This document shows, one piece after another, positions 11,718 to 37,908 of a stretch of DNA of 64,000 nt; position 1 is the first letter of the stretch; every line of letters starts with the position of its first letter. The stretch covers positions 37,980,914-38,044,913 of the forward strand of contig NC_069001.1 in NCBI RefSeq assembly GCF_001194135.2, written 5' to 3'. The notes under the pieces were generated by a model. That model did no database searches. It saw nothing but the letters and a program-made list of their open reading frames with translations, and was not told where the DNA came from. This DNA is from Octopus bimaculoides. Taxonomy: Eukaryota. Position numbers and translations under genes: made by a program.

Positions 11718-11890
11718 TCAGCTGTCACCATCGAGGAATGACAAGTCCAAAGACAGGAAGTTATTCTCCACTTCTATCCATTTCGCTGCTGACAGAAGTT
11801 CCTGTTCACCAAAACATTTGCCAATTAATTGTATTCCAAGAGGTAATCCCTTGGCAGATAATCGAGTTGGCACGGTAACGGCTGGTAGTC
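11718..11890 (-). CDS. QRSL1: QRSL1 exon 10, terminal ([39 protein letters not shown]...DGDS*)
   Basis: Acceptor ttcag|GA, stop TGA at 11720-11718; GLP.GIQLIG motif. Confidence 0.96.
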
Positions 11891-13617
11891 CTGAAGAGAT
11901 AAACAAACAATACACTTTAATTATAGGCTATTTGTAATTGTTTAATTATAAAGCATAATAATTAGGTCTGTTGTGAGTCCCGGGACTTATATGGCTGGAG
12001 CTTATGCTCATTTCTATAGTATATAAGTGACTAAAATTACAACACTGCCCCTGGATAGGATGCCAGTCCATCGCAGAGTTAACTCCTCAATTTACAGCTG
12101 AGTGGACTGGGGCAAAATGAAACGAAGTGGCATGCACAAGAATATTACAAACTGTGTGGTCTGGGAATTGATCCTACAATTGTGAGTGCCACATCTTTGC
12201 CACTAAGCCACATACCACCACAGAACATTTAATTAATTAATTTAATTATGGAATTTCTAGACCAGAGATTAGTAACTTCACTTAGTAAAGGTCCACTTGG
12301 TGATTTCTTGACATTTATGCACTGGCTTAGGGGTGCAGACATAGTCTTGGATTGAGTTGGATTTAGTAAATGGAAACTGATAGAAGCTCATCACCACTTA
12401 TTCACACACACATACATAAGTACATACGTGTATGTGTGTGATTGTCTGGATATCATGTGATCGATAGTTGGAAATGAGTGGCATATGTTTCCAGTATTCT
12501 CTGAAACTATGTCTGGCCACAGGGAAATATTACGTTGCAAGGAAACAGGAAATCTTCCGATTGATGTGGGATCCAAGCTTTGAGCTGACTGACATAAGCA
12601 AGTGGATGCCAATGGTTTCCAACACTCAGTTTTGATATTTGGAGGATATCTGCAATCATCCTGGTCGTACAACAGAGGTTGGCGTTGACTGACTGATTTG
12701 ATTTTGTTGCTGTTAATCTCAGGTAATTTCAGACAAGAGTGAGGTGCATTTTAAACTGAAAAATTTCCAGATCAAAATCTTGCTAACCACTTCAGGCACA
12801 CACATTCCATAATGGCATCCACCTTGCACACAACTGAAGGATAGAGAGAAGCCCATCTTAATATGGGTGCTCCTAGAAATTGAAAACAAGATCAAACTCT
12901 CTCATGAGAGAGAGAGAGAGAGAGAGAGGAGATGTGGACAGCATAAAAACAAATCCCAAAGTTTTCTATAAATCCACAAAGGAAACAACTACAATACAAT
13001 ATAAAATAGGACCATTGTTCCCTGGGAATGACTCACTGACGGTGGACCCAGGAAGGATAAGTGAACAATTTAGAAGTGTCTTCACTTCCCACTTGGACAA
13101 CATGCAGATAAAAAATCCAGCTGAATTCTTTGATATTGCATCACGAAAAAGGGAGGCACCAGCCATTGATTACATCAACACTGAGGGAACAGATGTAACA
13201 GTGGCCATAATCGAAATGATGTCGTACTCTGTTTCCCAGCCACTCTCCTGAACTCATGTAAGTAAGCTTTAGCGAAACCACTTTAAATATTTTTCCAAAG
13301 TTTCTTTCAAGTGGTATACTTCCTAAAAAAGCTGAAAGAGGGTATTATATGCCCTATTCACGAAGGTGCAAGTGGAGCAGAGGCCAAAAACTAGAAGCCA
13401 ATCTCTCTGACTTTGCATATCAGTAAAGTCATGCAGTGAATTATCAGAAAGAAGTTGATAATGTTCCCAGAAGAAAATGACCGACTGAACAATACTCAGC
13501 ATGGCTTCCGTCCAGGAAGAAGCTGCCTCACACACCTCCTACAGCACTACGACTGGGTTTTGATGCATATATGTATATACATATATATTTACATACGTAT
13601 ATACATACATACGTACG

Positions 13618-13649
<32 letters not shown>

Positions 13650-16600
13650 NNNNNNNNNNNNNNNNNNNNNNNNNNNNNNNNNNNNNNNNNNNNNNNNNNN
13701 NNNNNNNNNNNNNNNNNNNNNNNNNNNNNNNNNNNNNNNNNNNNNNNNNNNNNNNNNNNNNNNNNNNNNNNNNNNNNNNNNNNNNNNNNNNNNNNNNNNN
13801 NNNNNNNNNNNNNNNNNNNNNNNNNNNNNNNNNNNNNNNNNNNNNNNNNNNNNNNNNNNNNNNNNNNNNNNNNNNNNNNNNNNNNNNNNNNNNNNNNNNN
13901 NNNNNNNNNNNNNNNNNNNNNNNNNNNNNNNNNNNNNNNNNNNNNNNNNNNNNNNNNNNNNNTATATATTTCTCCAAATTTTTTTTCTCCGTGTTTTTCT
14001 CCTTGTCTCCGTATTCTTTCTGTTGAAGAGCGTAGCTCGAAACGTCAAAGACTTTCCGTATTCCCAAGCGTCATACTAATATATACTTTTGTTATTTACA
14101 CCACCTGTCCTCGTCTGTTGTTATTATTTTTCCTAGAGCCAACGACTTACTCGATAGTGATGGTCACTACCCCACCACCCCACAAACTGTAGAAGACAAA
14201 GAGAGGAGGGGAGGCGAGAGAAAGAGAGAGTGAGGGAGGCAGGAGGCGCGGGGTGATAATGGACTGATCCTCATCAAACAACGTGGCCAGCTGTGACTAC
14301 CTTTTTATGGTTTTATTGTATTATTTTTCCTCTGTTCATTGCATGGTTGTGTAGGTAATGATGCCAAGGTAGTTTGAAAAGCCAGGTGTTACCTTTCTGT
14401 CATTCTGATAAGCTAGGTGAGGTTTCAATACAAACCCTGCTGTTACAGCCATCACAGTGTGTTCACATGTCCAGGTAAGGAACCAAGTTCACTAGCATAT
14501 GTGCAGGCGTGGTTGTGTGGTAAGAAGCTTGGTTGGCAACCACATGGTTCCAGGTTCAGTCCCACGGCATGGCATCTTGGGAAAGTGTCTTCTACTATAG
14601 GCTCAAGCCGACCAAAGCCATGTGAGTGGATTTGGTAGACGGAAACTGAAAGAAGCCCATTGCGCATATACGTATACATGCGTGTGCACATGTGTGTGTG
14701 TGTGCATCTGTTTGTCCCCCACCACTGTCTGACAACTGCTGTTGGTGTATTTATGTTGGTATGTAGGTAGGGAGGGAGGGAGGNNNNNNNNNNNNNNNNN
14801 NNNNNNNNNNNNNNNNNNNNNNNNNNNNNNNNNNNNNNNNNNNNNNNNNNNNNNNNNNNNNNNNNNNNNNNNNNNNNNNNNNNNNNNNNNNNNNNNNNNN
14901 NNNNNNNNNNNNNNNNNNNNNNNNNNNNNNNNNNNNNNNNNNNNNNNNNNNNNNNNNNNNNNNNNNNNNNNNNNNNNNNNNNNNNNNNNNNNNNNNNNNN
15001 NNNNNNNNNNNNNNNNNNNNNNNNNNNNNNNNNNNNNNNNNNNNNNNNNNNNNNNNNNNNNNNNNNNNNNNNNNNNNNNNNNNNNNNNNNNNNNNNNNNN
15101 NNNNNNNNNNNNNNNNNNNNNNNNNNNNNNNNNNNNNNNNNNNNNNNNNNNNNNNNNNNNNNNGATGATGATGATGATGATGATGATATATATATTTGAG
15201 TGCATGCATATGTCAGTGGGTGTGTGCATTTGCATACAGACACACACACACACACTGACATCCACACCAACAAAAGGATGTGTTGTTCTGTTTCAATATT
15301 GAATTTATTTTACATTCTTACGTCTTCAATAAACAAACCTTTCCCAAAAAGTTTTATCGCCACAAATCATTATTTAATGTTTGTTCGACAAATTCTGATG
15401 TAGGTGAACAATGACATCAATATCAACAAGAACAAGACACACACACATCAACAACAACAACATTCTTATTGAATTTCTGTAATGGAAACATAAGCAGCAG
15501 ATGGCAACATAGATATTATAAGACATGAAAGCTGCATATATTTTAATATTGGATGAAGAAATGGGTGATGGGTTCAGAAGTTTGTTTTATAACAATGCTG
15601 TAATGGGTTCAATTCCTTGGCAAAGCAGCATCTTGGCTAGAGGTCTTCTGCCATAAATCTTGGATTGATTTATGATTGAAATCTGAGAAACAGGAATTTG
15701 ATGGGGAAGAGATTGCCATTCCTGTTTTTGGTTGGTAGTTTTAACCCTTTGCCTGCCGTATGTGTCACATGTGTTGCACAAGGCATATTTCCCTGATGTT
15801 CCTGCATCATTTTTAATACAAATTTCCAAATATTTTTAAATTGCTAGAATAATTTGAGACTTGCAAAAGGAAAGCTTTATGCAACTCAGAACATATGAAA
15901 CAAAGGCAAACTAAAAGTCTGGAAACAAGCACAGATTTTTAGGACAAAGCTATGAAAATGTGTTAGACAGGCAAAGTCTTAAATGTCAAACAATTGTCTC
16001 CATAGCTTGTGAGGGGCTGTGATTGCAACAGGAGCCTGATGGTGCGGTTAACCATTTGCCTGTCACATCTGATACACAGAACATATTTGCTTGATGTTCA
16101 TGCATCACATACAATACACATTTGCAATTATTTCCCCCCCACCAGAGTAATTTGGGACTTGTAAAAGGAAAGCTTTATCTTACTCAGAATGTATGAAACA
16201 AGAACCAACTAAAAACAAGGCTGAAAACAAGAATGGACGTTTAGGACAAAGTTTCGAAAATGTTTTGGACAGGAAAAATCTTAAATGTCAAACAATTGTC
16301 TCCATAGTTTGTGAGGGGCTGTGATTTCAGTGGTGGCTTGAAGCTGGGGTTAACCATTTGCCTTTCACATACGATACACAGGTTACAGTTCCCTGGTACC
16401 ACGTATGATACTCACTCTCCATTGTTCTTTTTTTTTAACCATTTGAGTAACTTTGGATTTATGAAAAGGAAGCTTTATATAAGTCAGAAGGAATGAAAGA
16501 AGGGCTGACCAAAAGTTTGAAATACAAGAATGGATATTTAGGAGAGATTTATGAGAATGCTTTAAGCAGGTAAAAAGGTTAATCTGACATAGATTTAACA

Positions 16601-17355
16601 TCACTGCTTGGTCCTTTGGCCGAAGATGGAATATCTTTGACCACTTTGATCGTATGTCTACCTGACCAACGCTGATCTGGAGCTGAACAACAACAACAAC
16701 AGGAAAAAAAAAAACTACTTGGTTAATCATTCTGTTAGAAATAACAACCAAATTTCTCTGAAACACCAGCATGCTGTGTGAGAAAAGAAGGACACATTGT
16801 TACAGGAAGAGAGAGAGAGAGAGAGAGAAACAAATGGGACAGTCATGGACGGAGCGTTTTTGACTATATGTTTGCTCATCAATCAGGGCTGACCTGGGAT
16901 GGAGATTATACAACAACAATAACAACAAAAGCAACAATAACCCCACTAACAACAAAAACATTAATTACAACAATAATAAAAGTAACAACAACAACAACAA
17001 CAAGGAGAATGTGTAAAAGAAGCAAAACCTGCAAGATTCACGGATGTCGTGTAGAGATCCTGCTCAGAGATGCGGGTACGATTATCCTCCTGGCAGAAAT
17101 CCCTGTAGAGGGGAGCATCACTCACTGTTACTGGAGTAAGCAGCATGTCCACACCATTGGCAAACACTTGATGGAAGTCAGTGGTGATGAGTCGGCGGAG
17201 TTTCATGGATTGGGCCACATATTTGTTGTAGTTGCTGTAGCATGGACAGTACAGAGAGAAAAAGAGAGAGAGAAAGGGATTAAAGTTGATGATATATTTG
17301 ATGAAATATATATTTCATCAAATACATATATATATATATATATACATACAAGTAT

Positions 17356-17436
<81 letters not shown>

Positions 17437-20230
17437 TATGTATATATATAGTTGAACAAACTGTTCCTAGGACTTATTTCTTCTTCTTCCTCCTTTCCTT
17501 CTCCTCCTCCTTGTACTTCACTTTTGTTTCCTGATCGTTTTCCTCCCTGCTCCTTCCCTTTTTCTCCCACCCACCACATCATATCCACCCCATATACTCA
17601 CCCCGCCTCCACACTTTTAACTTTGTTCTTTCTTTCTCCCCCCCACCAATAGTTCCCCAACAACAAGGTCTGAAGGACGCACAATGTAACAGTACACCTT
17701 TGATGGATGCAGGTCTGAGGAAGATCCCCTCCATTCTCTAAAACCCCAAGTATTACATGATAGAATTTCTGCGTAAACTGGCATCACAAATGGAGATGGG
17801 AGGGAAACATGTGTGACTAATAATTGAAGAGGGGTCAAAGAATTTTCCTTGTCTTCTTTTCATTGGATTATTTACTCTTTGCCAATCCATATGATGGTAT
17901 AATCATCATGAAACTTGGATTTCCTACACCAGAAGTATTCCAGCCTTGGTTTGGATCCTGACAGTGTTCATAGCCCAGCATTCAGGTCGAGTACTTCTCT
18001 GGAAAACCCCCCAACTTCACATCCAACCTGACCGTAGCCATTTGCTCTCTCTCTCTCTCTCATAAATATATGGTTAGGGCAGCGGACTCGTGGTCGTAGG
18101 ATCATGGTTTCGATTCCCAGACCGGGCATTGTGAGTGTTTATTGAGCGAAAACACCTTAAAAGCTCCATGAAGCTCCTGCAGGGGGTGGTGGTGAACCCT
18201 GCTGTACTCTTCCACCACAACTTTCTTTCACTCCTTCCTGTTTCTGTTGTGCCTGTATTTCAAAGGGTCAGCCTTGTCACACTCTGTGTCATGCTAAATC
18301 TCCCCGAGAACTACATTAAGGGTACACATGTCTGTGGAGTGCTCAGCCACTTGCACATTAATAAATGAGCTGCAACGTCACTAATGCCAAGCTGTATCGG
18401 CCCCTTTGCCTTTCCCTTGGATAACATCAGTGGCATGGAGAGGAGAGGCCGGTATGCATGGGCAACTGCTGGTCTTCCATAAAAAAAACCCTGCCCAGAC
18501 TTGTGCTTCGGAGGGTAACTTTCTAGGTGCAATCCCATGGTCATTCATGACCGAAGGGGGTCACAACAACAACAACACAACAATATAAATAATGTAAATA
18601 TATATCTTGAAATACAATACTTTATACATACATTGAAGCCAGGATGCTGTACCAAAGAAGTGTGTATATGATTAAATTATAATAATGGACCAAAAGAAAT
18701 AGCAGTTGAATCTTCCTCCAATCACAACTTAAATACTCAACCTGTTAGAAATAGCAGCCAAATCTACCTTACAACATAACCTAGCGACTAAACATCCTAA
18801 AAATTGGAGTCATATCCTCCTCTGATCACACAACCAACTAGAAGTTGCAGCTAAATCACCCTCGAATCACATGCAATCTGCAAAGACATCATTAAAATCT
18901 CCCTCCAGGTGCACCCGACCTGCTAGAAATAGATGCAAAATGCCCTTTCAGTTACACCTTGCCTCCGCAAAAACTTTCAGAAACAGCAGCCAAATCTACT
19001 TCACATTATTTACTACCAAATGAAAATAGGAAGGACACATTAGGAAAAATTAACCCAGAGTGTATATATATACTATGCCTGAAAAACAAAGACTAGATGG
19101 TCACATATGGAGTGTGTTAGTTAATTGGTCAGATGGATCAGGTCTCACATAGGAAAACAACAACAACAGCAGCAGCAGCAGTAGCAGCGATGAGACAAAA
19201 GTTTTCCATTACCATAACTGTCTTTGAAACATCTGTTACACTGTGTGAATGTGTGTGTGTGAATGCGTGTGTGTGTTTGTGTGTATTTACACACATACGT
19301 ATGCTTAGAAGTAGGCTCTGTGTATTGATTTTGTACACACACATGCAAATATATATATGTGTGTGTGTGTGTAAGTGTGTGTAGAAAATCAATACATAAA
19401 ATATACTTCTAAACAGTAGTTCATGCTACACATAGACCATCAGAACACACACATACGCATACATACATGCACACACACACATACTACATGAAGCACAAGT
19501 GTGGCCCAGTGGTTAAGAAACTTACTTCCCAATGACATGGTTTCAGGTTCAGTCCCACATCACAGCACATTGGGCAAGTGTCTGTCACTACTGCCATTGG
19601 ACCGACCAAAGCCTTCTGGTTGGATTAGGTTGGCAGAAACTAAAAGAAGCCTACCATGTGTGTGTGTGTGTGTGTTGTCTTTTACTTGTTTCAGTCATTA
19701 GATATATACACACACACATATATATATACGATGGGCTCCTCTCAGTTTCTGTCTATCAAATCCACTCACAAGGCTTGGTCGGCCCAAGGCTATAGAAGAA
19801 GACACTTGCCCAAGGTGCCACGCAGTGGGACTGAACCTGCAACAATCATGTGGCTGGTAAGCAAGCTACTTACCACACAGCCACTCCATGTGTGTGTGAG
19901 TGTGCATGCTTGTGCCTCTTGTAATGAGCCCCTGAAAGAATGAATGGCAAAACTGTCTAAGGCAGGGTTTGAACTCAGATTATAGGAATAAAAACTGCAA
20001 AATACTGTGTCTTGCATGTTGACAACTCTAAACACACACACCCTATCACAACCGCTACCACACTACATTCTACAGGTACACTACAACCACAACAGTCTAT
20101 GCTATACATGCATACAAACACACAATGAATTACATCAACACACACCCACACACACACAGAGCAACATCTGTCACACTGAGTAATCAAATATAAAATTTAA
20201 ATACTAGGATATAAGATAATGTAGTGGTGG

Positions 20231-20264
<34 letters not shown>

Positions 20265-20916
20265 GGTGGTGGTGGTGGTGAAGGCTAATGAGTCAGCCTT
20301 CCCCACCTCCGCCCTCCTTCCACCTTCATTTTTGTATTTTGGGTTTTTCATTTGTTATCTTTTACTTGTTTCAGTCAGTGGACTGTGGCCATGCTGGAAC
20401 ACCACGCTGAAGAGTCTAGTCGAGCAATTTTGACCCCAGAACTTATTTTCTAAGCTTGGTACTTATTCTATCAGTGTCGTTTGCCAAACTGCTAAGTCAC
20501 AGAGACAGACAAACACCAACTGTCAAGCGGTGGTGGGGGACAAACACAAAAACACAAAAACACATACATACATACACACATATATATACAATGAGCTTCT
20601 TTCAGTTTCCACCTACCTAGTCCACTCACCAGGCTTTGGCCAGCCTGGGGCTATTGTAGAAGACACTTGCCCAAGGTGCCAGGCAGTGGATTGAAACCCA
20701 AGACCCTCCTTACTAACCAGCTGACCATAAACAGAATATAAATTTATGACAGGTTTAAACTGTAATTCTGTTACCTTTTTAGTAAAAAATAATTGCCGGC
20801 CAGAATCCTTCCTCGGACAACATCGTTGAAACCTTGGTGCCGGCTGGTGGCATACAATTGCTCTGTGGAGGCCATAATATTAGCACGGTGACCTGCAAAG
20901 ATTGAAGGTAAACAAT

Positions 20917-20957
<41 letters not shown>

Positions 20958-20967
20958 NNNNNNNNNN

Positions 20968-21021
<54 letters not shown>

Positions 21022-22056
21022 ACATACCTATATCATCATTATTATTTAACATCCATGAGGATTGCACGAGGCCCCAGGTGTCTGCTTTGGCTTGGTTTCC
21101 ATGGTTGGGTGCCCTTTCTGACACCAACCACTTTACAGAAGGTACTGAGCACTTTTTAGGTGGCATCATCATCCTCATCATCATCTTTTCCATGCTGGCA
21201 TGGGTTGGCTGGTTTGACAAGATCTGGCAAGGCCAAGGGTTGCACCAGGTTTCATAATCTGTTTTGGCTTGATTTCTACAGCTGGTTGGCCCTCGTGCTG
21301 GTGGCACGTAAAAGCACCCACTACACTCTCAGAGTGGTTGGCATTAGGAAGGGCATCCAGCTGTAGAAACTCTGCCAGATCAGATCGGAGCCAGGTGCAG
21401 CCATCTGGTTCGCCAGTCCTCAGTCAAAGTGTCCAACCCATGCTAGCATGGAAAGCAGACGTTAAACGATGATGATGATACACACACATATATGTAGACT
21501 GTATGTTGAATGTATAACGCATGTCTCTAGATAAATATGTACACACACACACATTTGTGTCTGTGTTGAGGCTGTATGTTGAATGTGTACTGTGTGTAGG
21601 TGATATGTATGCCTCTTGTATATATGGTGTGTGTGTAGCTACAAGTAAGACAGAGAGAAGAGAGAAGAGAGAGTCACAACTTACCATATTTGATTCCATC
21701 ATATCTTGCCATGTTGGATGCCACCTCACAACAACACAACACTACATAACAGCTTGAACCGTAATTGAAGTGTGGTAATGATACATCTACTACCTTGGCG
21801 CCAGCCCTCTCTAACTGGTCTGAAACTCTTGTCCATTCCTCAATTATCTCTGAAGAAGCCGCAGACAAGTAAGCTTCCTGCAAACACAAAAAGTGCCAAC
21901 GTTTGGGTTATTTCATTAAGAATTTATTTTAATCTTTTCGTTGTCATATTTCGGTTGAAATGCTCTGGCTTTGTTTCAATTAATTTTGAAAATATTAAAA
22001 TATTGAAGAATTTAGTAAAGAATATATATATATATCTATATCTATCTATCTATTTA

Positions 22057-22100
<44 letters not shown>

Positions 22101-25100
22101 AATATATATATTGTGTAAGAGATGGGTTGACCAGATATAAAAATTCATAAAAATGTCAAAAGAAAAGAAAATGTACTTTACCTTAGGAATGCCCACTGTT
22201 ATACCAACCATTGAGGGATGCTCATCAATGGAGAGTGGCTGGAATTTATTGGTCACTGTAGTGGAGTCTTTGATGTCATGACCTCTCAAAATATCTGAAA
22301 TATATATGATGGATGGTGTAACATGTATAGGTATACATACAGACAGACAAACATACAGACAGACAAACATACACGCATATACATATACATGTATGTATGT
22401 ATATTAAGTTGGAAAGAAAGTCCTGTTGCTACTCACTGAATATTAAGGCAGCGTCATCTACTGTTTTAGCCAGGATACCAGGGACATCAAAGGAGTTGAC
22501 GAGAGGGATCAGCCCATATCTTGATAAACTGCCATAGGTTGGCTTCAGACCAACAATGCCACAATATGCAGCAGGGTTTCTAGTTGAGCCTCCAGTATCT
22601 GATCCTAGGGCCCTGGTGTAAAGAAGAAAGGAAGAAAAAATGAGAAAGAGAAAAATAGTTTTGTTAAATAAGTAGAATATGTGCTGCTGTGAAGGTTTAA
22701 TAAAGCTGAAACATGTACAGTTCTTCCCTCCCCTCCTCTCAATAAGGGTGGCTCTGCCATGCATTTAATTTCTAATTAGCATCCCTATATTTTTCTTGTC
22801 CGTCTGTGTCTCACCCCACTCTCTTTATATATATATATGTCACAAAAGTGACAGAGGGTACTAACTAGTATTGCTTTTGCTAAAAATAAGAGTTAAAACT
22901 CCAAAGTCACAAAAGCGCTGTCTTAATGACTGGCAAAGGGAGGTAAGTTAATAGTGTACCTAGATGGATCCCAATTTCAGATTTTGATGGAGACCATCTT
23001 AATCCTCATCAGCAACTCTTAATGCCTAGGGTTAAACTCAACATATTCTGTCAGTCTTATAAAATTTATCTCCCTTTGAGACAGTGCTTTTGTTTGGCTT
23101 TTGAGTTGTTTTAACTCTTATTTTTAGCAAAAGCGGTGCTAGTCACTACACTCTGTCATTTTTGTGACTTCTTTTAATTTTGGTTTTGGCTTCTAATTGC
23201 TAATAAACCACACCTTTTAATTTGTTGTTTACACTTTTACCATTTTGAAAATCAGCAAATGTTTTCAACGGTTTTTCTTATAAGACTGATGGAAGTAGTT
23301 GAATTTAACCCTAGGCATTAAGAGAAATTGGATGTCTTACCCAAATGCAATTCCTGAAGCCACTGCGACAGCGCTCCCACCAGAACTTCCTCCAGTAATG
23401 AACCAATCCTCATCATCCAGCCACTGTTTGTGTCGCCTTTCATGGCTTAACAAGTTGTCTGTCTGTTGGTCCCATGACCTCTGAGGAGGGGCCGAGCTGT
23501 CCTTTTCCTCATTTCCTGAGATGGTAGGTTGGATAGGTTTATCATTGTTACTCTCTAAATTTCCTTTCGGACCAGTCAAATGTTTGGTGCTGGAGCGGTC
23601 AAATGGATACTTCCAAGGATTCTTCACTGGCCCAAAATGGCTATCAATGCTGCCGGCCCTGAAAGTAGAAATATTCCATTTGATAACAAAATAAGAAAGA
23701 AACAAGATTTCAAGAAGAAAATCAAACAAAATTGAAAGACAAGACACAAATTTTCTCAGTTTGATCTTTGGGAACTGTTGTACCCTTAGATCACAGATCT
23801 GTGGAATTACGCAACTGAGGCAGTGAATCATCAGAGTTTAATTAAAGTGTTAAGAAGGATCATCATCGTATGAAATCCACTTTTCTGTGCTGGCATGGGT
23901 TGGACAGAATTTGTTGAGGCAGATTTTCCACAGCTGGATGCCTTCCCTGTCACCAACCCATACCTGTTTCCTGGCAAAGTATCTTCCGGTGGTCAGACAT
24001 GTTTTTCATTGAAGACTAGAAACAAACAACCCCGGCTGTATGATGGTGATATTCGTTTACAACCATCACATGATGTCAAGACACACATAAACACACAGAG
24101 GCATTCATACATATACACAACCACATCTTACCCATGCCAGCATGGAAAGTGGACATTAAATGTTGATGTCCAGCAGCAGGCTTTTTACAGTTTCTGTCCA
24201 CCAAATCCATTCTAAAAGGCTGGCCTGAGGCTAAGTGGGATAGTTGGACCCAATGGGAATGCCTTGTGGTGTTTGTTCCAACATTTTGCACTTTGAATTC
24301 AAGTCCCACCGAGGTCAACTTGGCTTTACATCCTTTCAAGGGTTAGAAGAACAGTAGCAATCACAGGTGGTGGGTTAGTGGGACTAGATACCTTGTGGTA
24401 TTGGTTCTGGCTCTTTGAAATCATCATCATCAGTATTGCAATAACACTACTTACCCCATGGCAAACTCGTCCATGTTTGTCTTACCAATTATGGTGGCAC
24501 CTTGTTGCAGTAATTTCTCTACAACTGTGGCATTGTAGGGTGGCATGTAATTGTGCAACATTGCTGAGGCACATGTTGTCCGTACACCTTCTGTACTAAA
24601 GTTGTCCTTAATGGCAAAAGGCAGACCTTGAAGTATCTTGGAGCAGCTGGTCTCTGAAATGTACATGCAGAAGAACATTATTATTATTATTATTATCATC
24701 ATCATTATTATAAGTATTATTATTATTATTATTATTAAGGTGGGGACCTGGAGGATTGTTAGCACACCCCGAGTAAAATGCTTAGTGGTATTTTGTCCTT
24801 CTGTACGTTCTGAGTTCAAATTCTGTCATCCAAACATTGGATTTGTTAGTTTCTATCCAGTCTCCCTGGCAGATGTTTGTGCCGAATGTGACTTTGGAGT
24901 CCAAGTCAGTGGTGAAAGAGTCATGGGCAGAATTCACACAGGGTGGTCAGTGCAGGTCGAGGATGTTGAAGACGCTCCTTTCTTCTCCTGTGCTTTACCT
25001 CCTCATTCTGTTGTCTGTTCTGCTCAAAGGAGCTGGCTCCATTGTGGATGGCAGTCCTCCAGTCCGTCCTATCCATGGCAATCTGTTCGCATGAGGATGG

Positions 25101-27830: not shown

Positions 27831-28407
27831 TCTTTTAAAAGCGATTTGGAAACAATAATTTCTCTGAAATATTATAATTGTTGTTGTTGAAGAATCGAAA
27901 AAAAATTTCGACCTTGAACATGCTAACCTGGAACCGGTATCAGAGTAAAACTAGTTCTACCGACTTTGTGATCCGGCCATGTCGATAGAGAGAGAGAGAG
28001 AGAGAGAGAGTAGGAAAGAGATATGAGTGATACGAGAGAGAGAGAGAGAGAGAGAGAGAGTAGGAAAGAGAAAAGAGTGATACGAGAGAGAGAGAGAGAA
28101 AGCGGGTGAGAGATATGAGGTTAGAATGAAAGAGAGAAAGAAAAAAAAAACAGGAAGAGAGAGACGGAGAGAGAAAGAAAAAGAGGAACAAAGAGACGGA
28201 GAGAGAGGATTTGGCTGGTAACAAATTTACAGAGTAGATTAATTGTGTCGACACCGCACCAATATAAACTAAACGAAGCCGCCGCACGTTGTTTTATTGT
28301 CTTGTGTTTTGTAAATGATGCCCAGAGCTGCATCTCGGTTGAGGTTTATGGCCTTTCTCAGGATATACTGTATCTTTTAGTGCTCCCGCCACCGCTAACG
28401 ACTGAAT

Positions 28408-28439
<32 letters not shown>

Positions 28440-28440
28440 G
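27831..28440. promoter_or_regulatory. Putative bidirectional promoter/5' UTRs shared by QRSL1 and RTN4IP1
   Basis: ~610 bp between divergent ATGs. CpG-retaining, with GC-box-like CTCCCGCCACC (~28383-28393) and GCCGCCGCACG (~28278-28288), (AG)n arrays and a (CA)n run. TSS positions are unknown. Confidence 0.75.
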
Positions 28441-28750
28441 ATGATGATGTTGAGGATGTCGAAGTTATATAATAACATTTCGTCTTTGAAGCTGTTGTCA
28501 AATAATTTCAAGACTGGGGCGCACGGCAGCAGAGTCACCTTGGTGCAGCAGCTCCTCCAATGCCGCAGCTTTTCTGACGGCGAACAGACCAGCTTCAGCC
28601 ACCGAATGTCGGCATGGAATATCTATTCTTACGGCTGTGACCAGATGACCTTGTCCAAAACCACTCGTGTCCCGTCTGTGTTGGACCCTGGAGATGTGTT
28701 GGTCGACGTCCATGCTGCCAGCGTCAACCCGATTGATGTCATGATGAGAG
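28441..28750 (+). CDS. RTN4IP1: RTN4IP1 exon 1 (presequence ... VHAASVNPIDVMMR)
   Basis: Donor AGAG|GTAAGG, phase 1. Confidence 0.93.
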
Positions 28751-31700
28751 GTAAGGCTGTTTTCGCTGCTTTACCTCGCATTTACACCCATCTCCAACTT
28801 TTCTTCGTGCCAGAATCATTTACCGACCCTAGTTCAAATCCTGTCGGGTTCAACTGCTTTCCATTCGCTCTGAGTTTTATAAAATAGATTACCAGTTTAC
28901 TACCGGAGTTGATTGAAACGACCAACGTCCCGTCCATATCTCCGGCCTTGAGCCCTATATGCTAGAAACAGTTATTATTTTCAAAATGTAGTAAATCGGC
29001 AGAATTGTTAGCGCGTCGGACAAAATGCTTAGCGGTATTTCTTTCGGCTTTTTGCGTTCAGAGTTCAAATTCCACAGAGGTCGACTTTGCCTTTCATCCT
29101 TCAGGGCCAGTTAAATACTTCAAAATCGTTAGATTGGAATTAAAATTAGAAGCAATTATTTTAAAGCGGTGGACTGGCAAAATCGTTAGAGCGCAGAGAA
29201 AATATTTTGTGATATTTGTTCTGGTCCTTTGTGTTGTGAGTTCAAATCCTACGCAGGTTAGCGTTGCCTTTCATCCCCGGCAAAAACAAAATAAATTACA
29301 AGAAGACCGTTGTAGTTCTTTGGGAACATTGTACTACAGAAATAGAATAATGAAGGAAATGAAGAAGACTTCGAGCCATGGAAGTTGAAAAAATCTCGAA
29401 AGGTTCTTCAACTTTCATCTCTTGCATCCACATCATGTCTTCATATCAGTGCTGTTTCTTTTTCTCTTGCCCATATACTCACTGATCTTCAAGTTCTTTT
29501 TCCTGCTTTCATATCCTCAGTTGTACTTTTGACCCTGTAAATTGTCCACTCCAATAACAGCTACCTCTGTTGGGTCTACTCATTGTAACACTCCTCATTC
29601 AGCAATCCTTCATCTAAAAATGTTTCCTCATCTCTTTCCTACCAGCATCAGTGAGTGTAGGTGCATCGCTGTCATTTCAACAGCTCCTTCATTCACCCGA
29701 CACCTTGCTTCTCAACCACGACCCTTCACGTCTCTCTTCCTCTCATCACAGAACGTGGTAAGCCGCTTGTTTTCAGTTCCTCTCCATGAGAGATATTCCT
29801 TACAGTGGACTGAGATGATCGAATGCAGTTTTCTGGACACTGATGATTTGGCTCAGCCAATTATTGGACATTCGGCCAGTGTTGGCTGCAGTACTTTTTG
29901 GTGCTGAAGGCCAACTCCTGCACATATGCATACAGAAATATACACATATAGATAGACAGACAGAAAGATGGAGGGATAGATAGATACATACATAGATGGA
30001 TAGATAGACAGGGAGAAGACCCAGCAAGTAAAGTGAGATCACAGCCATAGCCTACACCAGTGTTGCATAACCAGCCCACATAAAAAGTACCTTAGGATTG
30101 TCAGGTGACATGCTGTGCTTGAGGAAACCTATTGAGTCAAGTAAATCAAAATCAAATGGAAATTGTAATTGTGGCCGATACCAGTGCTCCCTGACTGGCT
30201 TCCGTGCTGGTGTCATGCAATAAGCACCATTCATGTGTGGGTCATTGCCAGTGCCGCCCAACTGGCTCTCATGCTGGTGGCACGTAAAAAGCACCCATTA
30301 CACTCTCGGAGTGGTTGGCGTTAGGAAGGGCATCCGGCTGTAGAAACTCTGCCAGATCAGATTGGAGCCTGGTGTGGCCTCCTGGCTTGCCAGTCCCCAG
30401 TCAAACCATCCAACCCATGCCAGCATGGAAAGCGGATGTTAAACGATGATGATGATGACAGACAGACAGATGGACGGGTGGATGGCTCGACAGACAGGTA
30501 GATGGATAGAAAACATTGCAATTTATTAATTGTACATGATTGATAGAAACACTTTGCCTCTCCTCATTCACTTAAAAAGAAATATGTTTGCACACATAAA
30601 TAGAGGGAAAGAGGAGAAACGGTGAGGGAGGGAAAGAGGAGAGCAAGAGAGAGAGAGGGAGAGAGAGAGAGAGCAAAATATTAAAACATCTGTAATTCCA
30701 AAACGGCCAAAATGTCTCCGACCCGCCTGATTCTTAGCTCCTCTTCCAGCTCTCCTGGCGTTTCCTCTTTCCTATTTATTCCCATTTTCTTCCAGGTCTG
30801 TTCATTATCTGTTATGACCCCCAGGAAAAGACTAACGATTATAATGAATGTTAACCCCAGGTCAGCTTTGTTTTTTGAACAGACATATGATCAAAGACGT
30901 TCCAGGCATGACCAGCCCATTAAAGTTTTATGCAGTCAGTTGTCCTTCTTTTAGGGGTCCACTCATAGATGTCGGTATGTATGTCTAGCAACATCCCTGT
31001 CCCCTAGATGTCAGCAGAACATGTCATTGTGAGTTTTACTTGTTCTTCATTGAAGGTCAGTAAGTGGTCCGAAGTTGAAGTATTTAGTGACCACCCCTGA
31101 TGAGGAAACCCAGTCTATTGTGCCATCGTCTTGTAGGATGTCTCAGTGGTTTGATTCTATTAACAGATGGTTACGGTGAAAAACTCATCAACCTCATCCG
31201 ATGGCAACTTGGCAGCAAGCATTTTGTTGGTTCTGAATTTCCGCTCATTTTGGGACGAGACTTTTCCGGAACTGTTGTCTCCGTTGGAAAGAATGTGACC
31301 AGCTTTCAGCCGGGCGACGAGGTTTGTCTCTTTCATTCATTTATTCTTTCTGTTATCATCATTGTTGTCATCATCATCATCATCACCACCACAACCAACA
31401 CTGCCACCATCATCATTTACCATGATCTTCAGCATCACAGCTACCACCATCATCATCATCATCATTATGACCAACATCATCACTATCATCACGACTAATG
31501 GGTGTGTAAAGGGCTTGTACAGTGCCATATAAAAGCACCCAGTGCCACCCTGTAAAGTGGTTGGAATTAGGAAGGGCATTCAGCCGTAGAAACCATGCCG
31601 AACCAGACTGGATCCTGGGGCAGCTCCCCCAGCTTGCCAGCCTTGGTCAAACCGTCCAGCTCGTGCCAACATGGACAACGGACGTTAAGTGATGACGACG

Positions 31701-31951
31701 ATGATGATGATGCACATTGCTTTTAATTATTCATGCGTCATCTGGTCGCTTTAAGATTTCGATAACATGATTGTATATTTTCAAAATGACATTGTAGGGT
31801 AAGTGTGAGAAGCCAGATCTGGCTAGTTTGAACATAAAAAAAAAGGTCAAATATTTGATCTGGATATGGACGGTTTAAATGCTAAAGGCTTAAAGACAGC
31901 AAGGTATGATTTGAGGGCAATTATACTTGTACACATGAATGTATACTTGCA

Positions 31952-31994
<43 letters not shown>

Positions 31995-34900
31995 GTATGT
32001 GTGTGTGTTTTAAATGAATCTTTCTATTTGTGTTTTTTTCTTTTATTTTCCTTTTTACCCCCTAGGTATGGGGAGTTGTGGGGGCACACAACCAAGGCAG
32101 CCACGCCCAGTTTTGTGTGGCATCAACAAAGGAGGTGAGTTTGAATTAATCATCATCATCATCATCATTATCATCACCAGTGAAACAATGGAGTCAATGT
32201 AATCGACTCATCCCTTCCCCCCGAAATTGCTGGCCTTGTGCCACAATTTGAAATCATTATTATTATTATTCTTTTAACCCCAAATTTTGTTGGAACTCCT
32301 GGAATCTTGCTTGAGTTGTGGCCTTGCTACCTGTTACCTGTGCTTTTCAACTCTCTGATACCTTCCTGATGGTTCTGGCCATGCCAAGGAGTTAAACCTT
32401 TCGCAACGTCTCTCCTGGGTACTCCATTGGAACCATTTCTTTTATATTTCTCTCAATACCCTTCAATATTGTCCCCCAAGGCTACAACAATAACTGGCAC
32501 CATCAGGCTATTTCGTATTTACAAGTCTCCTTTCTTGTCTTCCTTCTTAACAGCCCATGGGACAAATGGGAATGCAACATCAGTCATGGAACACATGTGG
32601 TTTACTTTGTCGTTCGCCACCACCACCACCATGTAGTGGCTGGGCAGAATTGTTAGGGTGTCAGGATGGAGTGTAAAATCGACTTTGCTGAGATTTGAAC
32701 TTAGAATGAAGCAAACCTCGTCAAACATTGTTTTTTTCCGATTCTCTCAGGATTCTGCTATCCATCCTTCCATCGCTCTGTTGACGGAATTGTAAGGTTT
32801 GCTGATAGTTGTTGTTTAACCCGTGGTTCATTCTGACCAATGTCTAGGTCGAGAGGCGTTCCAACCATGACCACACACTGTCAGTTTAGAAGTATATCCA
32901 AGACTTCTTCTTTAGTTGCCATGTTCAGAATGTAGGACGGAGGCGATCATGCCCTACCAGAGTTTTCTGTAGCAGTTCCACATCCGGGTGTTTAATGCCT
33001 CTTTCATCCAACTAGTTCGTGGAGGCGCAATGGCCCAGTGGTTAGGGCAGCGGACTCGCGGTTTCGATTCCCAGACCGGGCGTTGTGAGTGTTTATTGAG
33101 CGAAAACACCTTAAAAGCTCCATGAGGCTCCGGCAGGGGATGGTGGCGAACCCTGCTCTACTCTTCCACCACATCTTTCTCTCACTCTTTCTTCCTGTTT
33201 CTGTTGTGCCTGTAATTCAAAGGGTCAGCCTTGTCACACTCTGTGTCACGCTGAATGTCCCCGAGAACTACGTTAAGGGTACACGTGTCTGTGGAGTGCT
33301 CAGCCACTTACACGTTAATTTCACGAGCAGGCTGTTCCGTTGATCGGATCAACTGGAACCCTCGACGTCGTAAGCGACGGAGTGCCAACAACAACAACAA
33401 CAACAACCAACCAGTTCATTAAGCTTGACATCCAGATCATCCCCCTTCAATCTTTCCAGTCATTGCCCCTTTCTCCAGGCCCTCTTTCCTCATTACATGA
33501 CCAAGAAATCTCAGTTGTTTGGCCCTTCTCTCACCAAGCGGCTTCCTATTCGCTGCGGCCCGGCTCATCACTTCTTCGTTAGTCTCTTAGTCCGTCTATG
33601 CTGTTCTCAATATTCGCCTTAAGAATCGCATTTCACAGCTCTCGTAAAATACATTATCGAATAACACCTTTCTTTATTTACAGTTGTAATTTGTGGCCGG
33701 TTGAGCAACAAGCCAGAGAAGCACTTCCGTTTGGTTTGTGCTGTGTGTGTGTGTAAGCGTATAGAATATATTTATCACAGTTAGTAGATCGGTATTAAAA
33801 ATCGGGGTAAATAACTCTTGCGTTCTTACGATAAAGGAAGATAACTCTTGCGTTCTTACGATAAAGGGAGATAACTCTTGTGACAGTTTGTGAGGGGAAA
33901 GAATTGGTAGTTAAGCCTGGAAAATATATATTGTATATAAACACACACACATACATACATATATGTGTGTGTGTGTGTGTGTGTATATAATGAAAGGATA
34001 TATATTCCGACTAGGTCACTGGCCTGAGTAGAATCGTGTGAGCCCATTGCTATATCAAATGCATTTTCCCTATCTAACTTACTCCATATTTTATATATTC
34101 TAAAACACACACACCCACATCATGCATGCACACACTCAGGTCTAACCATCTATCCATCATCTGTCTGTCTGTCTCTATCTAAGTTTTGAGTGTGTATGTA
34201 TTGTATGTGCTTCTTCTCCCTTGCTCTCCAACCATAACTCTTGCACCTCCTCTTACATCCCCCAGATAATCATATATATATATATATATATATATATANN
34301 NNNNNNNNNNNNNNNNNNNNNNNNNNNNNNNNNNNNNNNNNNNNNNNNNNNNNNNNNNNNNNNNNNNNNNNNNNNNNNNNNNNNNNNNNNNNNNNNNNNN
34401 NNNNNNNNNNNNNNNNNNNNNNNNNNTATATATTATATATGCATATAAATATACATATCTTTATATATCTTTTTATATTATATCTGCATCTATCTCTCTT
34501 TATAATTGATTGTCTTTTTGTGTTAGCTGTGCCACAAACCCTCCACTCTCACTCACATTGAGGCTGCTTCTCTGCCTTACGTGGCACTCACAGCTTGGAG
34601 TGCCCTGTGTTCTGTTGGAGAAATCACTCAGCAAAAAGCACCAAACTTGAGGTAAGTCCTTCACTCAACATCATCTGCGTGTTTTTTGTGTTTGTTTTTA
34701 TTTCACAGGATCTCTTGTTGTTTTTGTTGTTGTTGTGTAGCCATGGGCTGACTCTGGTTAGAGTAACATCTATGGGACATAACTTGGTTAGTTCATCAAT
34801 AGTTGAAGGGCAGAGGCTTGATTAATTGATCCACAGATTTATAGTAGATAAGTGATTAGTTAATCCACTTGTCTATGGAACATTGGGGATCAGTTGATCC

Positions 34901-36103
34901 AAGGGTACATTAGATAATAGAGACCTAGATACACAATGCTCTTTGAAAAAAAGGCAGACTTGATGTTCCCAGCATCACTAACCTTTGATCATGGTTGCGC
35001 TTGATCTGGGCTGACCTAGGGTTAAATGCTTCTATCACCACCACCACTACCAACAACAACAACAACACCAGCAACAACATTCAGTTGTATTTCTTTATCT
35101 TTTCCAGAGTCTTTATTCAAGCTGGTTCTGGTGGAATTGGAACTTTTGCTGTTCAGGTTGGTTTAAACAGAATTTTGTTTTTGTTTTAATATAGTTCAGT
35201 TGTGTGTGTGTGTGTTCATATTCCTGTTTTTTCTTTTTCTTTGTGTCGCACGCCTGTGACATCAGACTAGTATAGCAACATAAGTTTATAGATACAAAGG
35301 AAATGTCAAACATATCTCATCATACTGTACAGTGATGTACACTAAGTGACGGAGGTGTAAACGCACCAACATAGGTTGTCAAGCGATGGTGGGGGACAAA
35401 AACACAGACAAACACACATACACATATATGTATATATACGACAGGCTTCTTTCAGTTTCCGTCTACCAAATCAACTCACAAGACTTTGGTCAGCCCAAGA
35501 CTACTGTCGAAGATACTTGCTCAAGGTGCCATGCAGTGGGACTGAACCTAGAACCTTATAGTTTGGAAGCAAGCTTCTTACCATGCAGCCATCCCCCCCC
35601 CCACATGTATATTTGTCATGTAACCCTCCTTTGTTCTTCCAGCTGATGTCAGCATGGGGTGCCCATGTGACATCAACATGCAGTACAGATGCCATTGACC
35701 TTGTGAGGTCACTTGGAGCCAATGTGGTCATCGATTATAAAACACAGAATGAAGAAGACGAACTGAGACAGATGGATGGGTGAGTTCATTATTCTTTTGT
35801 CCTTCTTTTCTCATTCTGTCTCATTTCTCTCTCTCTCTCCCCTCACAATTTTTTTGTCATCTCCCCCTTCTACTCACTCTTCTTCCTCTTCCTTTTCAGC
35901 TTTCACCTTTACCTTGATGTTCTTGGTAAGAAGCCGTCTCGGAATGTCTTGAAGAATTGGTGCAATGCCAAGTATGTGACAATAAAGACGCCATTCCTTG
36001 AAGACACAGACACCCATGGTGTACCTGCTGGCTTCCTCCGCTCGGCCGGTTCCCTTGGCTGTAACATTCTCGAGGTTTGTCAATGCTAATTGGTGATGGT
36101 GCC

Positions 36104-36149
<46 letters not shown>

Positions 36150-37908
36150 CATGTGTTTAGTCCTAGGTCAGCCTCTGAGCTAGCAGACCTGTTGTCAAAG
36201 ACAATCCAACAATGACCAGCCAGTCTGTTGTTTTTCCAGACTACATAGCCAATGTGTCCTTGTTTTTCTTTAGACAGTAGGACATAATTTGAGTGAGAGG
36301 TTAGCTGCTATTTCTTGCTGGTCAAGCAACCATGTCGATTCTTTATGGTTGCTGTTTAGCCCCGGGTCACTTCTGATCCAAAAGATCTATGATCAAAACT
36401 GTCCTAGCTGTGACCATCCTGTCTTTTAGTTAGGCATAGTGTACCTAAGACTACATTATTTAACGTTGCTTTCTTTGTTGTTGTTGTTGTTTAACCCCGG
36501 GTCAGCCCTCATCCAAAATGACCTTTGACCATGGTGTCTTTACCGTGGCCATCCTGTCTGTTACTAACACATAGTGTACCTAGGACTGTATTATCTAATT
36601 TGTCCTTTTTGAAATGAAAGGGTGTGATTTGAAGGAGATTTAGCTGCTGTTTCTAGCAGTTGAATCACACCAGAGGCTATGGTTCAACTCCCTTTTTAGC
36701 ACATGCATGCGTGTTTGTGTGTGTCTTTTGTGCTTACATCTGTGTCCATATATGTATGTATGTATGTGTATGTATATTCATATATGTGCATGTCAGTGTG
36801 TATGTTTGTGTGTTTGGAAAGGGTTTTTCTGCTACCCTACAGTATGGCCAGTAACCCGTCCACTATTGCCAAGACTCTCACACATCACAATAAAATACAG
36901 CCCCACCCCCATCCCTTATCTCACACCAAAAAATGTCTTCCTGCATATAATTACGACTTTGTTAGACACAACCCACTTCCTTGCCAGACACACCTCTTTA
37001 CTAGACATGACCTAACTCTTCACTACTAGACACACCCACATTATACTGCGACACACCCACTTCTCAATGTAATTTCCTTCTTGTACCCTCATCTCTCCTC
37101 CCATCTCTATAACAGTTACTCCCACTATCACCTTTATAAAAGAGACCCTCACTACTCCATTGATCCTCTCCTCCCACTACCACCTCTGCTACCATGATGT
37201 TGGCTTATCATCTTCGGTCATGTTTCAGAATCTAAAGAATGGACAGAGTTATCGCTGGGCGTTCTTCATCCCTGATTGGAGGGCACTGAGGTGTATTGGT
37301 CAGCTGGTGGACAACGGTCAGGTAAGACAAATATCGTGCATGCACACAAAACACACACACACCCCCCTATCGCCTAATATCACCCCTGTGTCTGGAGTGG
37401 CTCTACCATTGCTCTCTCTGTATTGTTCTAGATGAAAACGCACCCACGTCTACACACATGTACAACACACATTCTACACACACATGCACATGCACTACAC
37501 ACACACATACACACTACATACACACTACATACACACACACATTCTACACACACACACACCTCCCTATACCCTATACATCCCCCTTTTCCTGGTATGACTC
37601 CACCTTCTCCCCATCTGTATCTATTGTACCACATTGAACCAGTCACACCCATACCTTCACCTGATCTACACACACACACGTCCCCACATACATTTACACC
37701 CCATACATGTGCACACCCACACACCTACACCTTCATATCTTCCACTCCCATATCCAGTGTCCCTCTCCTATCTCTCTCTCTCTTGTACCAGATCAAACCA
37801 GTCATCGACAAGGTGTTTCCCTTTCATCAACTGCCTCACGCCTACAACCATGTCGAGGCCGGACACAGTCGAGGTAAAACAGTCATTGATGTAAAGTGTA
37901 CAGAGTAA
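28441..37908 (+). CDS. RTN4IP1: RTN4IP1 (reticulon-4-interacting protein 1), mitochondrial NADPH oxidoreductase, MDR/quinone-oxidoreductase family; full gene span, 9 coding exons, ~407-409 aa
   Basis: Exons of 310+155+69+125+49+137+175+93+117 = 1230 nt join in frame. Motifs: [46 protein letters not shown] (nucleotide binding), YRWAFF, GHSRGKTV. The N-terminus is basic/hydroxylated and lacks acidic residues, like a mitochondrial presequence. Start ATG is ambiguous (28441/28444/28447/28456). Confidence 0.97.
30030..30457 (+). mobile_element. RTE-3'-type (GAT)n-tailed repeat, family C (representative copy)
   Basis: Other copies: ~240-500(-), 1440-1660(+), 21164-21293(-), 21294-21480(+), 26174-26380(-), 27099-27200(+), 31500-31710(+). 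A SINE sharing the tail occurs at ~1985-2210(+) and 23870-24170(-). Confidence 0.85.
31167..31321 (+). CDS. RTN4IP1: RTN4IP1 exon 2 (GYGEKLINLIR...[28 protein letters not shown])
   Basis: Acceptor taacag|AT, donor GAG|GTTTGT. Confidence 0.96.
32066..32134 (+). CDS. RTN4IP1: RTN4IP1 exon 3 (VWGVVGAHNQGSHAQFCVASTKE)
   Basis: Acceptor cctag|GTA, donor GAG|GTGAGT; 69 nt, phase 0-0. Confidence 0.92.
33021..33406 (+). mobile_element. SINE family B copy in RTN4IP1 intron 3
   Basis: A-box TGGCCCAGTGG, B-box-like GGTTTCGATTCC, (CAA)n tail; TSD CCAAC(T/C)AGTTC. Confidence 0.9.
33821..33890 (+). repeat. 30-bp tandem repeat x ~2.3
   Basis: ATAACTCTTGCGTTCTTACGATAAAGG(A/G)AG repeated. Confidence 0.9.
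33990..34110 (-). mobile_element. Second short Penelope-like RT relic in RTN4IP1 intron 3
   Basis: AFDIAMGSHDSTQASDLVGIYIL, the same motif as at ~50580-50650. Confidence 0.7.
34527..34651 (+). CDS. RTN4IP1: RTN4IP1 exon 4 ([41 protein letters not shown])
   Basis: Acceptor gttag|CTG, donor AG|GTAAGT. Not shown as a clean ORF in the supplied track. Confidence 0.96.
35108..35156 (+). CDS. RTN4IP1: RTN4IP1 exon 5 ([16 protein letters not shown])
   Basis: Acceptor ttccag|A, donor CAG|GTTGGT; Gly-rich NADPH-binding loop. Confidence 0.95.
35643..35779 (+). CDS. RTN4IP1: RTN4IP1 exon 6 ([33 protein letters not shown]...)
   Basis: Acceptor ttccag|CTG, donor GG|GTGAGT. Confidence 0.96.
35900..36074 (+). 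CDS. RTN4IP1: RTN4IP1 exon 7 (FHLYLDVLG...AKYVTIKTPFLEDTDTHGVPAG...NILE)
   Basis: Acceptor ttttcag|C, donor GAG|GTTTGT; YVT..TPFL motif. Confidence 0.93.
37229..37321 (+). CDS. RTN4IP1: RTN4IP1 exon 8 (NLKNGQSYRWAFFIPDWRALRCIGQLVDNGQ)
   Basis: Acceptor tttcag|AAT, donor CAG|GTAAGA. Confidence 0.96.
37792..37908 (+). CDS. RTN4IP1: RTN4IP1 exon 9, terminal (IKPVIDKVFPFHQLPHAYNHVEAGHSRGKTVIDVKCTE*)
   Basis: Acceptor gtaccag|ATC, stop TAA ending at 37908. Confidence 0.97.
   Translation: MKPVIDKVFPFHQLPHAYNHVEAGHSRGKTVIDVKCTE

Follow-up and report, generated by a model that had tools for sequence, protein, structure and literature searches.

Dávila López et al. (2010, PLoS One; PMC2871058) placed RTN4IP1-QRSL1 in the top ten, by conservation, of the bidirectional gene pairs of humans. 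The two human genes, at 6q21, are separated by 80 bp of intergenic DNA, with a conservation score of 0.13 and a Gene Ontology (GO) similarity of 0.75 (PMC2871058, Table 2), and the pair was recorded in zebrafish, fugu, stickleback, medaka, Tetraodon, chicken, frog, mouse, human and Daphnia pulex (PMC2871058, Table S5). Here we describe the same two genes in a 64,000-nucleotide stretch of the Octopus bimaculoides genome (NC_069001.1, positions 37,980,914 to 38,044,913 of the forward strand; hereafter, the window). In the window the pair occupies positions 11718-37908, exactly from the QRSL1 stop codon to the RTN4IP1 stop codon. We consider it likely that these orthologous genes, which diverge from a single 610-bp, transposon-free and CpG-undepleted region, form an old pair that has been kept together by the entanglement of their promoters.

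Two further studies describe comparable systems. Irimia et al. (2012, Genome Research; PMC3514665) found an enrichment for 5'-5' orientation, short intergenic distance and co-expression among conserved ancient pairs, which are repeatedly lost nonetheless. HSPD1-HSPE1 and the other 5'-5' conserved ancestral microsyntenic pairs of that study resemble the octopus pair in that they are mitochondrial housekeeping genes, arranged head-to-head less than 1 kb apart, found across phyla and lost in some lineages. However, HSPD1 and HSPE1 are subunits of one chaperonin machine and their shared promoter has been shown experimentally, whereas QRSL1 and RTN4IP1 belong to different pathways and their shared promoter is putative. 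HSPD1-HSPE1 also reaches unicellular holozoans and fungi, whereas QRSL1-RTN4IP1 was not found in the two cnidarians that we checked. Schmidbaur et al. (2022, Nature Communications; PMC9023564) counted 275 metazoan microsyntenies in the squid Euprymna against 216 in the scallop, and found that retained coleoid microsynteny blocks tend toward co-expression, those of O. bimaculoides included. Like these blocks, the octopus pair is an ancient linkage that has outlasted the reorganisation of coleoid genomes, although that study scored blocks of at least three genes and QRSL1-RTN4IP1 is a pair of two; the pair is mentioned in neither its text nor the supplements searched. An earlier reading of the window, made from its letters alone (the sequence-only reading), had proposed that, if the DNA came from a cephalopod, the pair survived in a heavily rearranged lineage. 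Because the squid keeps more of these linkages than the scallop does, such survival in a coleoid is not exceptional, and this part of the reading proved unremarkable.

The octopus and human pairs consist of the same orthologues in the same divergent orientation, with sub-kilobase spacing in both, but the human 80 bp is measured between genes and the octopus 610 bp between start codons. Conservation of the pair across protostomes and deuterostomes is already published (PMC2871058). The Octopus, Argonauta, Lingula and amphioxus pairs described below lie outside the 64 genomes of that study, and they add cephalopods, a brachiopod and amphioxus to the known vertebrate and Daphnia distribution, all of which is incremental. 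Further additions are a list of at least five independent losses and the observation that QRSL1 has swapped partners where RTN4IP1 left. The pair is a textbook-clean example of divergent housekeeping genes that has outlasted more than 500 million years of rearrangement, the coleoid reshuffle and large changes in gene size. It is nonetheless a known and ordinary conserved pair of its kind, and current understanding is unchanged; both genes are annotated publicly and the conservation has been in print since 2010.

We established the identity of the two genes. Window bases 18441-47908 were byte-identical to GCA_001194135.2 CM046621.1:37,999,354-38,028,821, on the O. bimaculoides chromosome around 37.98-38.04 Mb, and the guess that the DNA came from a cephalopod was therefore correct. 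The exon translations of QRSL1 and RTN4IP1 were 100% identical to the O. bimaculoides NCBI proteins P0001 (mitochondrial Glu-tRNA(Gln) amidotransferase subunit A, isoform X2) and P0121 (reticulon-4-interacting protein 1 homolog), respectively, and both genes are annotated already in the public record of this species. The Pfam domain PF01425 (Amidase), which covers most of the protein, was found on P0001, on all its top homologues and on the gene in the octopus record. A PDB search with octopus QRSL1 returned seven GatA sequences at 1e-97 to 5e-64, the yeast mitochondrial GatA 4N0H among them, followed by biuret hydrolase at 1e-40 and FAAH at 4e-33 to 1e-12, and the top 120 database matches were all named mitochondrial GatA. 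The amidase-signature motifs are intact in the translated exons, including FAIKDNF, GGSSGGSA and GSDTGGSTR. We take these motifs to belong to the Ser-cisSer-Lys catalytic triad, FAIKDNF carrying the catalytic Lys and GSDTGGSTR the nucleophile Ser. From its sequence, QRSL1 is predicted to supply subunit A (GatA) of mitochondrial GatCAB, which would transamidate Glu-tRNA(Gln) jointly with GatB and GatC.

RTN4IP1 carries PF08240, PF00107 and PF13602, that is, the ADH_N plus ADH_zinc_N architecture. Its best PDB match was human RTN4IP1 (2VN8) at 2.4e-100, in a single alignment stretch over residues 55-405. The next MDR protein followed at 8e-31, and the paralogues CRYZ (1YB5), VAT1, TP53I3 (2J8Z) and CRYZL1 scored 3e-14, 5e-12, 1e-12 and 1e-10. 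In the database search the octopus protein matched the human RTN4IP1 entry P0227 at 5e-58. The AGSGGIGTF motif, which we assign to nucleotide binding, is intact in exon 5. The N-terminus is basic, with about 45 amino acids free of acidic residues, which is only suggestive of a location in the mitochondrial matrix. In mammals RTN4IP1 is a mitochondrial-matrix NAD(P)H oxidoreductase of the MDR superfamily that is required to make coenzyme Q (CoQ) and to complete the late assembly of complex I (PMC10830421, PMC12489013), and by analogy the octopus protein would be an enzyme of the same kind. Across molluscs, brachiopods, amphioxus and vertebrates the top database matches carry the names mitochondrial GatA or RTN4IP1. 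Pfam, the database names and the PDB ranking bear out the gene names proposed in the sequence-only reading, and the possibility that the best matches would be other paralogues fails against the drop from 2.4e-100 to 8e-31 for RTN4IP1 and from 1e-97 to 1e-40 for GatA. The window genes are unambiguously the single-copy true orthologues of QRSL1 and RTN4IP1.

The complete structure of both genes was obtained by rebuilding the coding sequences, with a search for GT/AG boundaries that reproduced the proteins exactly. QRSL1 (isoform X1; 565 amino acids, 1698 nt, 10 coding exons) spans 11718..27830 on the minus strand, and RTN4IP1 (409 amino acids, 1230 nt, 9 coding exons) spans 28441..37908 on the plus strand. 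Every intron of both genes is GT-AG (9/9 in QRSL1), and in both genes the start codon is the earliest in-frame ATG to follow an upstream stop in the same frame. The rebuilt RTN4IP1 is an exact match to P0121, and the rebuilt QRSL1 consists of a 12-residue exon 1 peptide followed by P0001 residues 9-561. This short QRSL1 exon 1 (36 nt; 27795..27830, minus strand) has its ATG at 27830 and its GT donor at 27794, with no ATG intervening after the upstream in-frame stop, and it is backed by the N-terminus of the independently assembled Argonauta hians protein P0002. The exact models confirm the 5'-5' orientation on opposite strands. The start codons of QRSL1 (27830, minus) and RTN4IP1 (28441, plus) diverge with exactly 610 bp between them (27831-28440), in agreement with the earlier figure of about 610-625 bp.

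We then compared the genomic loci of 12 species, Octopus included, with 10-kb flanks, and confirmed or excluded the partner gene by tblastn. The pair is head-to-head in five of them, with ATG-ATG distances of 610 bp in O. bimaculoides and 1034 bp in Argonauta hians (both cephalopods), 532 bp in Lingula anatina (brachiopod), 512 bp in Branchiostoma lanceolatum (cephalochordate) and 642 bp in Sorex araneus (mammal). It is not adjacent in Pecten maximus (bivalve), Gigantopelta aegis (gastropod), Lineus longissimus (nemertean), Helobdella robusta (annelid), Tachypleus tridentatus (chelicerate) or the cnidarians Nematostella vectensis and Exaiptasia diaphana. In none of these seven did tblastn find a copy of the partner gene within 10 kb, and we therefore rejected the idea that an unannotated RTN4IP1 or QRSL1 lies beside its partner there. 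The microsynteny check proposed in the sequence-only reading thus came out mixed: amphioxus, Lingula and Argonauta keep the pair, whereas the scallop, gastropod, nemertean, annelid, chelicerate and cnidarians do not. Adjacency and orientation are conserved in Mollusca, Brachiopoda and Chordata in our survey and in Arthropoda through Daphnia (PMC2871058), and the ATG-ATG distance stays at 0.5-1.0 kb across the positive species although gene spans range from 6 kb to 31 kb.

The claim that the arrangement is that of human 6q21 is upheld by the 642-bp head-to-head pair of Sorex and by the published human pair (PMC2871058). Octopus, Argonauta, Lingula, amphioxus and Sorex, together with Daphnia (PMC2871058), likewise support an origin no later than the protostome-deuterostome ancestor. 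The parsimonious account is that the head-to-head arrangement is ancestral to bilaterians, or earlier, with one origin and repeated losses, because three or four independent assemblies of the same divergent adjacency would be extremely improbable by our own estimate. The non-adjacency in cnidarians would reflect either an origin on the bilaterian stem or a loss in anthozoans.

In two of the species that have lost the pair, QRSL1 has acquired another neighbour. In Gigantopelta it stands head-to-head with an unrelated His_Phos_1 gene at 402 bp (L010 1274-9598), and in Lineus with an unrelated UPF0220 gene at 847 bp (L006 7368-9153). This suggests that the QRSL1 promoter is generically bidirectional and able to swap partners.

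The divergent intergenic region of the octopus (27831..28440, no strand assigned), analysed for CpG content, repeats and open reading frames (ORFs), is a putative shared or bidirectional promoter together with both 5' untranslated regions (UTRs). Within it, tandem repeats rich in (GA)n occupy 27987-28206 and a (CA)n tract occupies 28412-28439, and a CCAAT/TATA-like element, CCAATATAAA, stands at 28259-28268, 173 bp upstream of the RTN4IP1 ATG. An upstream ORF of 21 codons at 28315-28380, which encodes MMPRAASRLRFMAFLRIYCIF followed by a stop codon, is in frame with the RTN4IP1 ATG and 61 bp ahead of it, and it would lie in the 5' UTR if transcription begins near CCAATATAAA. Interspersed-repeat copies, which make up 27% of the QRSL1 span and 17% of the RTN4IP1 span, were not detected in the intergenic region. 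Its CpG observed/expected ratio (o/e) is 0.97, against a window median of 0.42, and the intergenic regions of Argonauta (1.13 vs 0.58), Lingula (1.0 vs 0.27) and Sorex (0.84 vs 0.25) also exceed the surrounding locus. This undepleted state fits a constitutively unmethylated promoter, for which it is suggestive, not diagnostic. In the literature we found no paper that dissects the promoter of the QRSL1-RTN4IP1 pair.

A bidirectional-promoter pair was taken as two divergent genes whose transcription start sites (TSSs) are less than 1000 bp apart. With start codons 610 bp apart, the two octopus TSSs would be separated by no more than that distance if there are no non-coding exons upstream, with the reservation that the annotated start of the QRSL1 isoform X2 is 16 kb away. 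With the same proviso about upstream exons, the 610 bp would hold both 5' UTRs and both core promoters, probably within one short nucleosome-free stretch of open chromatin. Almost no neutral target would then be left for a breakpoint or a transposon insertion between the two genes, because any break would harm at least one essential housekeeping gene. Under such passive entanglement, correlated expression would be an expected by-product and not necessarily what selection acts on.

Several observations weigh against this account of an old and entangled pair. The pair is split in 5/10 sampled bilaterians and not adjacent in 2/2 cnidarians. The constraint on adjacency is therefore breakable, as Pecten, Gigantopelta, Lineus, Helobdella, Tachypleus and the two cnidarians demonstrate. 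Tandem repeat, as (GA)n/(CA)n microsatellite, makes up 33% of the intergenic region. The CpG contrast is weak in amphioxus (0.50 vs 0.36), and the octopus value of 0.97 reaches only about the 90th percentile of 610-bp windows here; we therefore set aside the CpG-island signature as a diagnostic. A blastn comparison of the Octopus and Argonauta intergenic regions gave (GA)n/(CT)n microsatellite matches only and no non-repeat similarity. With (GA)n tracts at 13 sites across the window, these matches were rejected as evidence of conserved promoter sequence between the two species. A scan for NRF1, YY1, GABP/ETS, SP1, CRE and ZNF143 motifs found none in the octopus intergenic region and none common to the five species used here and in the CpG comparison (Octopus, Argonauta, Lingula, amphioxus and Sorex).

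The strongest competitor of promoter entanglement is that the linkage is actively kept by selection for co-regulation, through a shared bidirectional promoter, of two coupled mitochondrial genes that support oxidative phosphorylation. Both products belong to the mitochondrial matrix and to respiratory-chain biogenesis, QRSL1 through mitochondrial translation and RTN4IP1 through CoQ and complex I (PMC10830421, PMC12489013), and the GO similarity of the human pair, at 0.75, points the same way (PMC2871058). Conserved head-to-head pairs are generally enriched for co-expression (PMC3514665), and orientation and spacing are conserved in four phyla. QRSL1 is, moreover, the gene most correlated with RTN4IP1 in breast tumours of The Cancer Genome Atlas (PMC10174766). 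However, the top 20 of that list also include further neighbours on 6q (PMC10174766), so that the correlation is confounded by 6q21 copy number, and we discounted human tumour co-expression as evidence. The two enzymes also work in different pathways, the five-species scan found no conserved cis-motif, and at least five of the bilaterian lineages sampled retain both genes but have them apart. The unrelated divergent partners of QRSL1 in Gigantopelta (His_Phos_1) and Lineus (UPF0220) favour generic promoter bidirectionality over a need for RTN4IP1, and the partner swap likewise favours shared-promoter entanglement over a need for this particular partner. We therefore regard selection for co-regulation as a tentative explanation that our results do not support and that is on balance doubtful.

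A more far-reaching proposal concerns the promoter itself and an alternative start of QRSL1. The annotated first coding exon of QRSL1 isoform X2 (MSCSSNIC, 8 codons; 43819..43842, minus strand), to which the NCBI gene range for QRSL1 extends, lies 16 kb upstream of QRSL1 exon 1 and 5.9 kb past the RTN4IP1 stop codon. Because this exon lies beyond the 3' end of RTN4IP1, the whole of RTN4IP1 is nested antisense in intron 1 of isoform X2, and in this annotated arrangement the octopus pair is unlike the human one. The exon sits in repeat-like, microsatellite-flanked DNA that adjoins the CpG-rich stretch 43300-43600, which has among the highest CpG o/e in the window. The exon may reflect an alternative promoter derived from a transposon, or else an artefact of the gene model. 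According to the proposal, the promoter architecture itself, with start codons about 0.5-0.65 kb apart, CpG-undepleted and transposon-free, and possibly with purine-rich (GA)n in octopods, has been held for more than 500 million years, and the X2 transcript, running antisense through RTN4IP1 from 16 kb upstream, might add a lineage-specific coupling. We think this improbable. If it were true, the pair would be a tractable model of an Urbilaterian bidirectional promoter.

Convergence, in which the adjacency was gained separately in chordates, brachiopods, cephalopods and cladocerans, would account for the patchy distribution of the pair, which is absent in most sampled spiralians, in a chelicerate and in both cnidarians. 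Such patchiness is also what the sequence-only reading had named as a sign of convergence that would count against it. By our own estimate, however, acquiring one specific divergent neighbour among roughly 20,000 genes is an event of about 1 in 10^4 per lineage, and convergence would require three or four such events, all of them with matching orientation and sub-kilobase spacing. Rearrangement, in contrast, breaks pairs easily, and losses of this kind are well documented even among the most conserved of them (PMC3514665). In Pecten, Gigantopelta and Tachypleus, QRSL1 and RTN4IP1 are listed on records that match in length and presumably represent one chromosome, which fits a local break of an ancestral linkage. 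Separate gains are accordingly very unlikely, and a single old origin of the pair is the reading that we retain.

The window contains 16 N gaps, four of them within 11718-37908, and all four are intronic: 13650-13962 and 14784-15163 in QRSL1 intron 9, 20958-20967 in QRSL1 intron 7, and 34299-34426 in RTN4IP1 intron 3. One uninterrupted, gap-free block (20968-34298) takes in the intergenic region together with exons 1-7 of QRSL1 and exons 1-3 of RTN4IP1, and the head-to-head junction is therefore independent of scaffolding. Because the NCBI models come from the same assembly, we sought independent evidence on exons that might be hidden in the gaps. The Argonauta proteins, from an independent assembly, are colinear with the octopus proteins through every exon of both genes, the coding sequences are complete, and 2VN8 aligned unbroken over residues 55-405; hidden exons were thus rejected. 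That the genes were joined by mis-scaffolding over N gaps, or that either gene is a pseudogene or a fragment of a paralogue, is suggested by the number of gaps in the window and in the pair but is hardly credible, given the gap-free junction, the complete frames and canonical splice sites of both genes, and the same arrangement in Argonauta.

The remaining exons were likewise defined by the exact models and by alignment to Argonauta. On the minus strand, QRSL1 exon 2 lies at 25839..26004, exon 3, with the FAIKDNF motif, at 24455..24653, exon 4, in which a lineage-variable insert precedes GGSSGGSA, at 23341..23658, and exon 5, with GSDTGGSTR, at 22437..22612. They are followed by exon 6 (22182..22294), exon 7 (21685..21877), exon 8 (20775..20892), which is 65 bp from the 10-N gap, exon 9 (17029..17234) and exon 10 (11718..11890), which includes the stop codon. 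On the plus strand, RTN4IP1 exon 1 (28441..28750) begins with the ATG and encodes the basic, acid-poor N-terminus. Exon 2 lies at 31167..31321, exon 3 at 32066..32134, exon 4 at 34527..34651 (100 bp downstream of the N gap in intron 3), exon 5, with AGSGGIGTF, at 35108..35156, exon 6 at 35643..35779, exon 7 at 35900..36074, exon 8 at 37229..37321, and exon 9, including the stop codon, at 37792..37908.

The insert in QRSL1 exon 4 is a hydrophilic stretch of about 65 residues after the conserved NPWKYPF and before the next conserved segment. It has no counterpart in the bacterial GatA structures, and for this reason the alignments to these structures break into two stretches. In Argonauta QRSL1 (633 amino acids) the same spot is far more expanded, with low-complexity sequence rich in Thr, Ser and His.

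The introns had been described as repeat-bloated, which overstated their repeat content. Interspersed or tandem repeat accounts for 31% of the QRSL1 span and 19% of the RTN4IP1 span, and the octopus spans (16.1 kb for QRSL1 and 9.5 kb for RTN4IP1) compare with 31 kb in Argonauta, 27 kb in Sorex and 51 kb in Tachypleus, all of them larger. An interspersed family of about 200 bp, SINE-like and with copies 75-90% identical, occurs in both orientations in the introns of both genes and in the flanks. Copies lie at 26151-26400, 21287-21479, 1471-1660, 30254-30458, 11253-11434, 243-419, 31521-31712 and 27103-27198, among others. The family gives rise to recurring pseudo-ORFs, and no copy falls in the 610-bp intergenic region.

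Elsewhere in the window the only ORFs seen were low-complexity or repeat-derived, without further genes or more extensive synteny, and neither an Rfam family nor a tRNA was detected. Downstream of RTN4IP1, several stretches of 0.5-1 kb (46850-47400, 50950-52050 and 53450-54000) have a CpG o/e of 1.2-1.4, above that of the QRSL1/RTN4IP1 promoter region. Nothing recognisable as a coding ORF, Rfam family or tRNA lies near them, and they could be unmethylated repeats or unannotated promoters.

A last observation concerns the Lingula locus. Lingula RTN4IP1 has two copies of its last coding exon (residues 372-428), at L001 3446-3616 and 6043-6213, 2.6 kb apart. The two copies show 100% and 98% amino-acid identity, and the doubling reflects either a recent tandem exon duplication or a duplication in the assembly.

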